64,000 nucleotides of DNA from Macrostomum lignano (Eukaryota), in NCBI GenBank assembly GCA_002269645.1, contig NIVC01001776.1:275990-339989 (forward strand). Direction: 5' to 3'. A program made the position numbers and the translations under genes. Numbering within the stretch: the first letter of the stretch is position 1; every line of letters begins with the position of its first letter. The notes under the pieces were generated by a model. It did not search any database and was not told where the DNA came from. It saw nothing but the letters and a program-made list of their open reading frames with translations. Below, piece by piece: positions 1 through 6,600 of the stretch.

Positions 1-3000
1 CCTCCACCGAAGCCGTAGTCCGAATCTCTGGCCACTTAGAGTGCAGATCAATGGCAACGATTGCAAATCGGCTGCTGGCCGGCGCTTCGTGGATCTCGCC
101 GAAGATGTCCAGCTGAATCGTGTGCCACGGCTCTTTGGGCCACTCGGTCGTCTGCGCTGGAGCAGCGGGTCGCTTCCACTTCTCCGCCAGGCAGCAGCTG
201 ACGCAGGACTTGGCCAGATCCTCCAGTTGGGCGTCGATTCCCGGCCACCAGACCGTATCGCGAGCTCGGTGCTTCATCTTGACGATGCCGCAATGTCCCT
301 GGTGGATCAGCGCTAGTGCAGTGGCGCGCAAACTCTCGGGCACGACCGCGCGGTTTTATGCGAACCAGGAAGTTGCCGACCGTTGAAATCTCGCCTCGGA
401 GCTTGAAAAAGATTTTCTCCTCATCTGTTGGCGGCTCCTTCCAGTTGGCCTGCAGCTTTGCAGAAACGCTACGGATGAGCGGATCGGCCTGCGAGTGCTT
501 GTCCAGCAGCTCGGCCGATAGAATCCCGTCTAGCACCTGGTGGATGTCGGCCATCTCGTCGTCGTCATCGCCGTTGTCTGTCGACTCAGGTGGTCGCTCG
601 AAACGGGACAGGAAGTCTGGCACAACGTTGTCCTTTCCAGGCTTATACTCGACGTTGAAGTTGTACTGCAGGAGCCGGTCGTTTCATCGGTGGATGCGCA
701 GCGGCTTGTGCCCGGTGCCTTGGGTACACAGCAGTGCCTTGAGAGCCGAATGGTCAGTGCGCAAAGTCAGCCGTCTGCCGTAGGTGTGGATGTGGCAGCG
801 CTCGAGAGCCCAGATGCACACCAGGGCCTCTTTCTCGCTAGCTGAGTATCTGGACTCCGTTGGCGTCAGTGCTCGCGAGGCTTAGGCCACCGGCTTCTCT
901 GACTCGCCTACGCCTACGCGTTGAAGCAGCACCGCGCCAAGCGCGAAGTCAGACGCGTCGCACTCAACGATGGTGTCAGCGTTGCAGTCGAAGTGGCTTA
1001 GCACCGGCGGACTCGTCAGCTGTTGCTTGAGCTCGGCGAAAGCAGCGTCGCACTCGCTCGTCCAGTGGAAGACGGTGTCCTTCTTGAGCAGCTCTCGCAA
1101 TGGTCTCGCTGTCTTGGCGAAGTCGTATATGAACTTGGCGAAGTAGTTGACGGTTTCCAGGATTCCCCCAGGAATGAGGAGACGCCCCGTGCTGTCGTCG
1201 GTGCCGGGATGCGGAGCACGTCTTCGATGTTAGACTTGGACGGTCGAACTCCATCGGCTGAGATCCTGCAGCCCAAGAACACGATCTCCGGGACGCCGAT
1301 CTGGCATATCTCCTTGTTCAGCGTCAGCCCGTTTTCGTTGAGACGTTCGAGAACTGCCTGAAGCCGCTTGCCGTGCTCGTCCGAGTTGACGCCGTGAATG
1401 ACGATGTCATCCACTGAGTGCCGGACACCCTTGATGTCGGCCAGAACGGTTGACAGGATTTTCTGGAAACAGGCGCCGGAACTGGACATGCTGAACGGGA
1501 CCCTCGTGAACTGGTAGAGCCCGCAGTGAGTGATGAAAGCGGTCAGCTGCCTACTGCCGGGGTGCAGCGGGATCTGCAGGAAGCTTTGCTTCAGGTCCAG
1601 CTTGCTGAAGATCTGCGCGCCTGCAAACTCTGCGGCCAGCTCCTTCTGGGTCGGCCCGGGAAAATTATCCGGGTTGATCGCTTGGTTGCAGTTGCGCAGA
1701 TCAACACACAGTCGCAGGTCGCCATTCTTCTTCTTGAATACGACTAGATTGGACACCCAGGGAGAGGCATCGATCTTCTCGATGACACCTGCGGTTTCCA
1801 TCTTGCTTATCTCGTCCTTCACGCGGTCCTGAAGTGCTAGCGGCACCCGGAGCAGCGGCTCAACCATCGGTGTCGCATCCTGGCGCAGCTGTGGTCGATG
1901 GCAAAACTTCTTGGCCATACCGATACCGTCGAAGATTCCCGGGAACTCTCCAGCGATATCATCGATGCTTCTGATTGCGTTGACTCGGATTGAGAATCCC
2001 AGCTTGTCCATTCCGTCCAGACCGAGGATGTTGGCACCTCGTCGTGCGATGAAGAAGCGGCAAATGGCGGACTTGCCGCGGTGCACAACGCACAGCTGTG
2101 CGGTCCGAGCACGTCAATTGCAGAGCCTGTGTACGAGAACAGCTGCTTTGGAGTCGGCGTGATGACCGGTTGCTTCGGCAGGCGTTTCACAGTCTTCTCG
2201 TTGATGATGTTGACTCTTGAGCCCGTGTCCAATAGGAGCCTGACGTCGATGTCAGCAATGCTGCACGTCGCAAGTTAAGGAGCGACGCTTCATATTCTAC
2301 TGCAGATACTTCGAATGGCTCGTCGTCTTCGTCCTTTATGGTTCGAACCTGGCGTCGCTGTCGGCAGCAAGCTTTGAAGTGTCCGACCTTGTGGCAGTGC
2401 AAGCAGGTCTTGTCCTGCGCTGGATACTCTAAGGCGCAGGCGGCGTGCCCGGCCCTCCCGCAGTTGCCGCATCGTGTCTCTGCGCCGGATTTCTGCGATG
2501 CCGCATGCTTGGATCTCTTGCGTGATGGTGTACGCTGGCTGACCTTCTGAATGCGGGACTCGTCGTTGTCGCTCTTGCCGTCGCGCAGCTTCTTGGCGTC
2601 GTTGATTGCAGATTCGACCTGAACCGCCAATGCCATCGCCCTATCCAGCTCGAGCTCCTTTATCCAAGAGCAGTCGCTCTCGAATGCGCGGAGAATGGGT
2701 CTTCTCGATCTGGTCCCGGATCATCTGGTCACGAAAAGCGCCGTATTCGCAGTCTGCCGCAACGAACTGGCTGACTGGCTCGCCTGGCATCTGGGCGCGC
2801 GACTTGAACTTGTAGCGGTTGCTGATTGTGCTGTGCGACTGACCGAAGATCGTTTTCAGTGCAGCCACCAGCTTGTCAAACGTATCAACGCTCGTTGTGG
2901 GCAGATTCCTCAGCGCGTAGACTCTCTGGCTTCCTCGCCTAGCAGATGAACGAGAATCGCCTTCCTTTAGGTCCAAGGCCTCCAGGTAAATCTTGAATCC

Positions 3001-3087
3001 TTCGATCCAACGATTCCAAGGCGTGTGTGGCTGTCCTGGGTGGGCGAGAAACACGCGTGGCTCGGAAATGCGCAGACTCGTCGCCAT
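1..3087 (-). pseudogene. gag-pol pseudogene of the Gypsy element
   Basis: Split over several frames (ORFs 2641-3180, 2187-2636, 1837-2232, 1016-2086, 882-1100, 48-623). There is an in-frame TGA at 684-686 in RNase H (LRIHR*NDRLL), and the RT catalytic motif reads SVDD instead of YxDD. Confidence 0.88.
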
Positions 3088-3615: not shown

Positions 3616-6600
3616 CGATCCGATAGCTCGGCGCTGGCGTCCCCCGCAGTTGCCGAGGTGACGCCGCCGCAAGCCGTCAGCCGCCAGCCGAGCCAATCAA
3701 CGCTGCCGCCGCCGCTGGAATCGCCTTGACAACCACCGTTGCCACCGTTGCCATAGAGACAGTTGGCAACGGGCCCGGTTAGGCGGAGTTTGGATCGATT
3801 GGCCGACAAGCCGAGCCGGGACAGGGCGGCGTTCAGCTTGCGGAGGAGCCTAGCGGTGGCAGCTGGCCGGGTGCCGGCCAGGAGGTAATCGTCTGCGTAC
3901 CTGGGATAAGGATCAGGTGTGGGATTGGAGATGGCATACATGGTAAGTTTACGAGATAGCTTTTTAGAGTGTTACATTGGATGTTCAGAGCGAGACAAGT
4001 GTGAGATAGGATCTACGCGTGGAATGGGATATAGATGTGGGACGGAATCTAGGTGAGGAATGGGATCTAATGTAGGTGTCTACTGTAGGTGTGAGATGGG
4101 ATCTTCTCTAGGAGTGAGATGGGATCTACTGTAGGTGTGAGATGGGATCTGCTCTAGGAGTGAGATGGGATCTACTGTAGGTGTGAGATGGGATCTTTTC
4201 TAGGAGTGAGATGGGATCTGCTCTAGGTGTGGGATGGGATCTGCTCTAGAAGTGAGATGGGATCTGCTCTAGAAGTGAGATTGGATCTGCTCTAGGAGTG
4301 AGATGGGATCTACTGTAGGTGTGAGATGGGATCTGCTCTAGGAGTGAGATGGGATCTACTGTAGGTGTGAGATGGGATCTTTTCTAGGAGTGAGATGGGA
4401 TCTGCTCTAGGTGTGGGATGGGATCTGCTCTAGAAGTGAGATGGGATCTGCTCTAGAAGTGAGATTGGATCTGCTCTAGGAGTGAGATGGGATCTACTGT
4501 AGGTGTGAGATGGGACTCAGGTGTGAGATGGGACTCAGGTGTGAGATGGGACTCAGGTGTGAGATGGGACTCAGGTGTAAGATGGGACTCAGGTGTGAGA
4601 TGGGACTCAGGTGTGAGATGGGACTCAGGTGTGAGATGGGACTCAGGTGTGAGATGGGACTCAGGTATGAGATGGGACTCAGGTATGAGATGGGACTCAG
4701 GTGTGAGATGGGACTCAGGTGTGAGATGGGACTCAGGTGTGAGATGGGACTCAGGTGTGAGATGGGACTCAGGTGTGAGATGGGACTCAGGTATGAGATG
4801 GGACTCAGGTATGAGATGGGACTCAGGTGTGAGATGGGACTCAGGTGTGGTATGGAAGACAGCTGAATCCCCACCGCAGCAGCAGGAGTTCGTCCGGTCG
4901 CCGACGCCCAGTTTCATTCTGAGGCGCTCCTCCATCATCGCCGAGATCTCCAGCTTCCAACGAGTCAGTCAGCGTCAGGTAGCCGCGCTCGCAGCTGGCC
5001 AAGTACAGGTGGCACAGCAGCGGCGACACGGAGGCGCCCTGCGGCAGGCCCCTGGTCAGCTGGTAGAACCTGTCGCCAACTCGCAGGTGAACTCCGCTGG
5101 CCTGAATAACTGGCTCTGATTCCTCCTCCGGCCGGTGCAGCATTCGTTCAAGCAGCTGACGGGCTCTTTCCACCATCGCCAGAGTCGTCGGCTGCACCGG
5201 TGCGGCAGTGGCGTCGGCGTCGGCGGCTTCGTTGAAGACAGTCAGCAGGCGGCGATGATCGATGGAGTCGAAGCAGCGACTCACGTCCAGGCGGATCAGG
5301 CTGAAGCCTCCGGCTGCGAGGCGGGGGCAGCGCGGTTGGGGGCGGATTTGAGGGCGGATTTAGGGGCGGATTTGAGAGCGGATATAAGGGCAGATTTGAG
5401 GGCGGATTTAGGGGCGAATTTAGAGGTGGATTTAGGGGCGGATTTAGAGGCGGATTTAGGGGCGGATTTAGGAGCGGACTTAAGGGCGGATTTGAGGGCG
5501 GATTAAGGGGTGGATTTAGTGGCGGATTTAGGGGCAGATCTAGGGGCGGATTTGAGGGTGGATTAAGCAATGGATTTAGGGGCAGATCTGGGGGCGGATT
5601 TGGGGCCAGATTTAGGGGCGGACATAGGGGTGGATTTTGAGGGCATATCTAGGGGCGGATTTAGGGGCGGATTTAGATGGCGGATTTCGGGGCGGATTTA
5701 AGGGCAGATGTGGGGCAGATTGAGAGGCGGATTTAAGAGCGGATTTGGAGGCGGATTTAAGGGCGGATTTGAGGGTGGATTAAGCAATGGATTTAGGGGC
5801 AGATCTGGGGGCGGATTTGGGGCCAGATTTAGGGGCGGACTTAGGGGTGGATTTGAGGGCGTATTTAGGGGCGGATTTAGGGGCGGATTTTGGGGCGGAT
5901 TTAAGGGCAGATGTGGGGCGGATTGAGAGGCGGATTTAAGAGCGGATTTTGAGGCGGATTTAAGGGCAGATGTGGGGCGGATTGAGAGGCGGATTTAAGA
6001 GCGGATTTTGAGGCGGATTTAAGGGCGGATTTAGAGGCGGATTGGGGGGCCGATTTCGGGTCAAATTTAGGGGCGGATTTGAGGGTGAATTTGGAGGTGG
6101 ATTTAGGGGCGAATTTCGGGGCGGAGTTCGGGTGGGTTTTTTGTTAAGAGTAGATTAAAACTGCTTTTCACCCTCCATCGCAGCGTCCCGATGCCGTTGA
6201 AAAAAATCCAACAGCCGGCGCAGCATCGACTGTCGCGACCGACGCGGCGGGCACAGGCGCCGCAGGACGTTCAGCAGGTCGCTCAAGCGCCGGTTCAACG
6301 AGCCGCAGCGCAGCAGGGCGCCGGCCGCGGGCACAGCGGCGGGGAAGACGCAGAGAGGCCGGAAACTGCCACTTCCGGTGGAGTCGGACTGCTTTGGGAC
6401 AAGCCGCAGGTGGCCCAGTCCCAGATAGGCGCCATCTAGTAAGCGCCGCACTGGAGTTGGCTGGCGCGCCAGTACGCCTCGGCGATGCAAATCGGCTAGC
6501 GCGCTTTTTAGGGCGCCGTACCAGGCGCGCTTGCGATAATAGAGGCAATCGCCGGTGGAGCCTGGAGAAGATGTGGTAGCGTGGAACAGGCTGCGCAGGG

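Follow-up and report, generated by a model that had tools for sequence, protein, structure and literature searches.

Does the telomerase gene of the flatworm Macrostomum lignano carry a retrotransposon in one of its introns, or has a copy of that gene been cut short by one? The question arises from a stretch of 64,000 nucleotides (assembly GCA_002269645.1, contig NIVC01001776.1, positions 275,990 to 339,989; hereafter the window, with positions counted from its first letter), in which a minus-strand gene for telomerase reverse transcriptase (TERT) runs towards the left edge and is followed, on the same strand, by a Ty3/Gypsy element. The first-pass annotation, made from the letters alone, had offered two alternatives, an intronic element or a disabled TERT copy. 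This was the correct pair, and the evidence in the window leans towards the intronic one. On balance, we consider it somewhat probable that an old, tolerated Gypsy insertion lies in a TERT intron, with the exon or exons for the thumb, or C-terminal extension (CTE), beyond the left window edge. The interval 1-3616 that had been singled out comprises the element and a microsatellite, the TERT exons proper being located at 3616-7681.

The minus-strand gene is TERT, as judged by several independent lines of evidence. Its model comprises four exons, free of frameshifts and stops, with a coding sequence of 1733 nt for 577 amino acids:

7203 to 7681, minus strand: TERT exon 1, with ATG at 7681, the N-terminal part of the RNA-binding domain and the donor AG/GTGAGA
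6172 to 6701, minus strand: TERT exon 2, with T motif (6586-6521), motif 1 (6409-6392) and motif 2 (6364-6353), recognized by Pfam Telomerase_RBD and by alignment to TERTs
4875 to 5313, minus strand: TERT exon 3, with motif A (5290-5258), an IFD-like insertion and motif B' (5050-5012)
3616 to 3900, minus strand: TERT exon 4, with motif C (YADDYLL, 3899-3879), motif D (3809-3786) and motif E (WLGWRL, 3695-3678)

The GT/AG sites of the model are canonical (6/6 internal splice sites), the phases are consistent, and the exon junctions restore conserved sequence; that of exons 3 and 4 gives DELLLLR/YADDYLLAG, i.e. motif C. On exon 2, Pfam Telomerase_RBD (PF12009) scored 29 bits against a gathering cutoff of 25, and a T-motif stretch of 13 residues aligns with F[HY]vTE..yYRk.vW. 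Tetrahymena TERT was the best PDB sequence match (E 1.4e-6), over a region extending from the T motif to motif A. HMMER, run exhaustively against 1.84 billion representatives, returned 228 matches at E<=1e-3, the best at 1.4e-13 and 34% identity, and all six of the top matches that were scanned contain Telomerase_RBD and RVT_1, five of them TERT_C as well. In an alignment of 41 TERTs, all 14 invariant columns are kept (F199, W220, P262, R274, D346, D352, G425, Q428, G429, L481, D486, D487, K520 and G561). These include the complete catalytic Asp triad (D346 in motif A, D486 and D487 in motif C) together with F199 and W220 of the T motif, Q428/G429 of motif B', K520 of motif D and G561 of motif E. 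An AlphaFold model (pLDDT 71, pTM 0.69) was compared with PDB structures using Foldseek, and the first 18 matches were all TERTs (human, Candida, Tetrahymena, yeast and Tribolium; E 4.5e-14 to 1.2e-9). The highest target-normalized TM-score was obtained for a Candida tropicalis TERT described as "truncated from C-terminal domain". The overall fold of RNA-binding domain, fingers and palm in the model resembles that of solved TERTs.

The protein is very divergent. A word-indexed protein search with the 577 residues gave zero matches, the exhaustive protein search contained no relative above 34% identity, and metagenome contigs searched for related loci yielded no relative. The lack of a close relative in protein collections is attributable to the history of this gene: M. 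lignano TERT is described as real, very lowly expressed and filtered from the first transcriptome annotation (PMC5816591), its level being below 0.5 RPKM, and only a partial sequence was available to Lai et al. in 2017 (PMC5405514). The model has no TEN domain. The open reading frame starts at 7681, and there is no room for a TEN exon because a different gene on the same strand, GKRP-like, ends at 8277; TEN-less TERTs are common in protostomes (PMC5405514).

The break occurs just past the palm. Beyond motif E the TERT frame reads on for 20 residues, and the exon model closes at 3616, 20 codons and 2 nt after the motif, with GTGCGT next. The last residues, AELSD, align with (L)E(V)xxD, the opening of the thumb in relatives. 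In 11 of 12 aligned relatives the thumb runs on for 133-257 residues, and in the twelfth, an apparently truncated entry, for only 15. The earlier statement that the last visible TERT exon ends before the thumb with a phase-2 GT at 3615 was borne out. This donor and the tandem repeats around it, the latter delimited by Tandem Repeats Finder (TRF) with no strand assigned, are as follows:

3610 to 3615, minus strand: candidate splice donor GTGCGT, phase 2, by direct reading of the sequence, with GT at 3615-3614
3336 to 3611: (GTCT)69 microsatellite in the minus-strand reading, directly after the last TERT exon
4019 to 4849: 18/23/46-bp tandem repeats, filling TERT intron 3 (4874-3901)
5339 to 6125: 12-bp tandem repeat of ~66 copies, filling TERT intron 2 (6171-5314)
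6783 to 7147: (TGTC)91 microsatellite, filling TERT intron 1 (7202-6702)

All three TERT introns consist almost wholly of tandem repeat. The GACA/TGTC 4-mer is found in both orientations within the TERT gene and again at 26295-26597.

As the (GTCT)n array begins 4 nt after the donor at 3615, it offers a GT every 4 nt and in every phase. The phase-2 donor of the first-pass annotation is thus correctly located yet not unique, and since the microsatellite supplies GT donors in all phases, the phase-2 constraint that had been used for rejecting acceptors is weaker than was stated. The two nearest acceptors do give the short tails RVLAI* and RPA* reported for them; with the exon start at 3301, RVLAI* is reached after 5 codons from the phase-2 donor at 3615. 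Without splicing, the array would be read in the TERT frame as (CLSV)n, and no stop would be met for ~140 codons.

The earlier observation that no CTE exon precedes the Gypsy element was likewise reproduced. A CTE profile built from 55 relatives was run against six frames of the whole 64 kb and detected no CTE-like coding sequence (best E ~1), a result to be read with the strong divergence of this TERT and the poor conservation of CTEs in mind. As a control, 15 of the sequences were left out when the profile was built, and 15/15 were then recovered at E<=5e-11 in the same database. Pfam scans of open reading frames downstream of exon 4 gave retroelement domains only, and no TERT_C. A misplaced CTE elsewhere in the window, on either strand, was ruled out by the same six-frame scan. 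These results describe the window and not the gene as a whole: the CTE may lie past the window edge.

The apparent junction between gene and element deserves attention in itself, as it falls in a 276-bp perfect-type microsatellite. The 4-mer in question is repeated in the window at 6783-7147 and 26295-26597, and published M. lignano assemblies have been described as difficult owing to simple repeats (PMC5730564). Such features would suit a mis-join or collapse of the assembly at the (GACA)n/(GTCT)n array, in which case the Gypsy element would not be truly adjacent to TERT. Against this, an array of 276 bp is easily spanned by long reads, and no discontinuity is visible in the window; we hold a mis-join to be decidedly improbable.

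Beyond the array, on the same (minus) strand, follows the retroelement, cut by the left window edge. It carries gag, protease, reverse transcriptase, RNase H and the start of an integrase, in agreement with the sense-oriented Gypsy element described earlier, and is assigned to Ty3/Gypsy because of the domain order protease, reverse transcriptase, RNase H, integrase:

3088 to 3335, minus strand: leader or possible short remnant of a 5' long terminal repeat (LTR), ~250 bp between array and gag ATG, boundaries undefined
2190 to 3087, minus strand: gag, with ATG at 3087, CCHC knuckles at 2471-2436 and 2405-2364, and a frameshift near 2660, where the relative P0335 is continuous
2100 to 2274, minus strand: aspartic protease, with LLDTGS at 2235-2218, entered from gag by a -1 shift and left by a frameshift to the reverse transcriptase near 2100
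1166 to 2086, minus strand: reverse transcriptase, Pfam RVT_1 3.8e-22, with the catalytic ..VDD.. at 1417-1397
687 to 1160, minus strand: RNase H, Pfam RT_RNaseH/RT_RNaseH_2, with a frameshift near 1160, TAA at 884-882 and TGA at 686-684
2 to 355, minus strand: integrase N-terminus, Pfam Integrase_H2C2 3.7e-14, with the H2C2 finger at 304-191 and the first core residues at ~115-98, reached by a frameshift

The gag region shows a weak PNMA-like Pfam match, and the -1 shift from gag to protease may be natural. The closest proteins to the element are only 50% identical, several of the named ones being "K02A2.6-like" animal pol proteins. The LTR and primer-binding site that had been placed ~400 bp beyond the exon were not confirmed, with no second LTR copy in the window and ~250 bp between array and gag ATG. 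When 1-3340 was compared by blastn with the remaining window sequence, neither the element nor the region 3088-3340 was found a second time. Candidate primer-binding sites starting with TGG are present upstream of gag, none of which gave a match to the tRNA 3' ends compared; no tRNA gene and no Rfam family was found within the window. A heat-shock element, as in the heat-induced LTR retrotransposons of M. lignano, was not seen in the putative LTR on inspection by eye only.

The states of decay of the two neighbours differ markedly. Compared with continuous relatives, the element has frameshifts near 2660 (gag), near 2100 (protease to reverse transcriptase), near 1160 (reverse transcriptase to RNase H) and between 355 and 480 (before the integrase), and the TAA and TGA listed above lie in frame. 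Judged from these lesions in its sequence, the element is dead, without intact autonomous coding capacity. It carries 4-7 inactivating lesions in ~3.09 kb, and the same density predicts 2.3-3.9 lesions in the 1733 nt of TERT exons, where none was observed (Poisson P0 = 0.11 to 0.02). Lesion-free exons beside a decayed element argue that TERT stayed under selection after the insertion. The benign intronic reading is favoured because the TERT exons, their splice sites and the 14 invariant residues are intact, as opposed to at least six lesions in the element. From the combined data we infer that the GT at 3615, or a nearby GT, serves as a real donor, that a CTE exon is present past the window edge, and that the insertion is neutral.

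In this scenario a long intron would follow the palm exon (motifs C-E) of the TEN-less M. lignano TERT on its leftward course. This intron would open with a tandem repeat, as do the three introns upstream of it, and would also harbour the old, inactivated Ty3/Gypsy retrotransposon in the same orientation. After the remainder of the integrase and any 3' LTR, the thumb exon or exons would be expected more than ~1-1.5 kb past the left edge, and the element would be a passenger that the gene tolerates and removes along with the intron by splicing. The mean M. lignano intron measures 1.1-1.4 kb, and the share of LTR retrotransposons in the genome is 21%, that of simple or tandem repeats 15% (PMC5730564). 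The LTR retrotransposon families are mostly Ty3/Mdg4, with 137 families that belong mainly to the Mag and Gmr1/Osvaldo clades (PMC12801592). Given this share of LTR sequence and the predominance of Ty3/Mdg4, an LTR element inside an intron of TERT would be no surprise.

Several points weigh against this interpretation. Intronic LTR elements in sense orientation are generally selected against. No CTE exon was seen, as the window ends inside the Gypsy element. The argument from decay presumes that the element was intact at insertion, and it may have been defective already; two of its frameshifts fall at short homopolymers (G5 and A4) and are possible assembly errors. Differential decay is compatible also with selection on a truncated product. 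Finally, the array lies 4 nt from the donor at 3615 as compared with 25-55 nt in the other three introns and, given this closeness and a donor that is not unique, the insertion behind the break could have hit an exon instead of an intron.

An alternative view is that the window holds a disabled or truncated paralogue of TERT, severed before the thumb by the microsatellite and the Gypsy element (or by a rearrangement), while another copy supplies telomerase. The CTE was not found in the window, the coding frame enters the microsatellite directly and meets no stop for ~140 codons, and the donor GT is indistinguishable from the GTs of the repeat. Moreover, the assembly of the DV1 line contains duplicated non-repetitive blocks of >=95% identity that add up to 180 Mb (PMC5730564). 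In such a partly duplicated genome a redundant TERT copy could be lost harmlessly, which also counts against the intronic reading. Conversely, intact exons, six canonical splice sites and conserved invariant residues next to an element with at least six lesions speak against a severed gene. A recently disabled copy is possible despite the intact exons; overall, however, we regard a severed paralogue as rather unlikely.

A further question is whether the visible gene could be complete as it stands. A naturally thumb-less or short-tailed TERT, or an isoform created by the element, would end either in the 5-codon terminal exon RVLAI* or through an in-frame splice into gag. The second route would use an AG acceptor at 3162-3161 (exon start 3160, minus strand), which has a fair pyrimidine tract and, from the phase-2 donor at 3615, is in frame with the gag ATG and open for 173 codons. 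This would give a potential TERT-Gag chimera; it may be a coincidence, a gag-frame match being expected by chance in one frame of three. Loss of the CTE has been reported in Caenorhabditis, Ancylostoma ceylanicum and ants, and the published M. lignano TERT is only partial (PMC5405514). Still, five of the six scanned top relatives match Pfam TERT_C, and a canonical poly(A) hexamer was not found downstream. Between 3615 and 1 the minus strand contains no AATAAA or ATTAAA; as only ~0.3 of each are expected by chance at 58% GC, this absence is weak evidence. With the same reservation, the premature polyadenylation proposed in the first-pass annotation receives no support from canonical hexamers. 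A short-tailed TERT of this kind appears improbable to us. More doubtful again, and the least probable of the readings considered, is that the Gypsy insertion made a thumb-less TERT or a TERT-Gag fusion that has been kept under selection, e.g. as a telomerase regulator in a highly regenerative, partly polyploid flatworm.

The significance of the locus depends on which of these explanations holds. If the element is simply intronic, as we prefer, it adds a single retrotransposon to the many of a genome of which one-fifth is LTR elements, and matters little. As a useful by-product, the analysis provides a clean model, in four exons, for the catalytic core of M. lignano TERT, a very divergent, TEN-less and poorly documented gene that was not found in the protein databases searched here. 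If the copy is severed, the locus would show the loss of one TERT paralogue in a regeneration model whose genome had been partly duplicated. Should the locus instead yield an isoform that lacks the thumb or is fused to Gag, and that selection maintains, this would be an uncommon example of telomerase altered by a transposable element.

Several neighbouring features were recorded in the window. Upstream of TERT, a gene with a GKRP/MurQ-like SIS domain (8277-10466, minus strand; Pfam GKRP_SIS_N 2.6e-24) ends ~600 bp before the TERT ATG. Over 146 aa, its exon at 10145-9708 shares 99.3% identity with M. lignano A0A1I8ICF9, in support of this species as the source, and the M. lignano UniRef entry for this gene is named "5'-nucleotidase", a name at odds with its domains. 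Spliced-leader trans-splicing and polycistronic units are widespread in M. lignano, and the GKRP/MurQ-like gene and TERT might share a transcription unit. Next to a C2H2 zinc-finger coding sequence (11835-12323), a 24-bp tandem repeat (13918-14916, ~42 copies, 96% matches) lies inside an open frame of 593 aa (13941-15722, minus strand) and would encode (GIVGCVRL)n. An exon of an amiloride-sensitive sodium channel (ASC/DEG-ENaC) is located at 31537-32238 (minus strand; Pfam 2.3e-14), and an open reading frame with an (ACAG)n array at 25837-26706 is possibly part of this or a related gene. Another open reading frame, at 33149-33730 (minus strand), has a DUF4615 domain (1e-15). An AT-rich stretch holds an intact open reading frame of 522 aa (41713-43281, minus strand), which has no Pfam match and resembles a transposase or another protein domesticated from a mobile element. 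The segment 46100-46614 consists of 2.8 copies of a 183-bp unit with 99% identity; two minus-strand frames are open in it, and it has the appearance of a very recent tandem duplication. On the plus strand, two paralogues of a signal-anchored protein lie in tandem at 54278-55141 and 58256-59065, with almost the same sequence over their first ~170 residues. They show a weak PAN-like match and a C-terminus that is C-type-lectin-like by eye (WYWVGC, EPN), with no significant Pfam match.

Compared with known systems, the gene shares with canonical metazoan TERTs the T motif, motifs 1, 2, A, B', C, D and E, the long spacer between A and B', the invariant residues and the fold. It differs from them in that the window encodes no thumb and in an identity of at most 34% to any known TERT. 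The TEN domain is missing as in the TERT of Tribolium castaneum (PDB 3du5/6usr), and the lophotrochozoan TERTs without GQ/CP motifs (Lai et al. 2017, PMC5405514) are likewise among the nearest known forms. Like the CTE-less TERTs of Caenorhabditis, Ancylostoma ceylanicum and ants, its visible part stops shortly past motif E; unlike these, it has no stop codon, and the frame enters a microsatellite with no clean gene end (PMC5405514). The element resembles the Ty3/Mdg4 elements of M. lignano (PMC12801592) in having a gag with CCHC knuckles, then protease, reverse transcriptase, RNase H and integrase, whereas the copy in the window is dead, its LTRs were not seen, and its best protein relative is only 50% identical. 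A retrotransposon within a gene of a repeat-rich genome is an ordinary kind of feature. Sense-oriented intronic insertions of LTR elements or endogenous retroviruses, such as the IAP/ETn mutations of the mouse, can cut host transcripts short through early polyadenylation or faulty splicing. Like these, the element in the window has the orientation of its host gene and, in the intronic reading, is positioned between coding exons. In contrast to the mouse insertions, any use of a poly(A) or splice site within it would be hypothetical, and it is old and decayed beside host exons that have been conserved.

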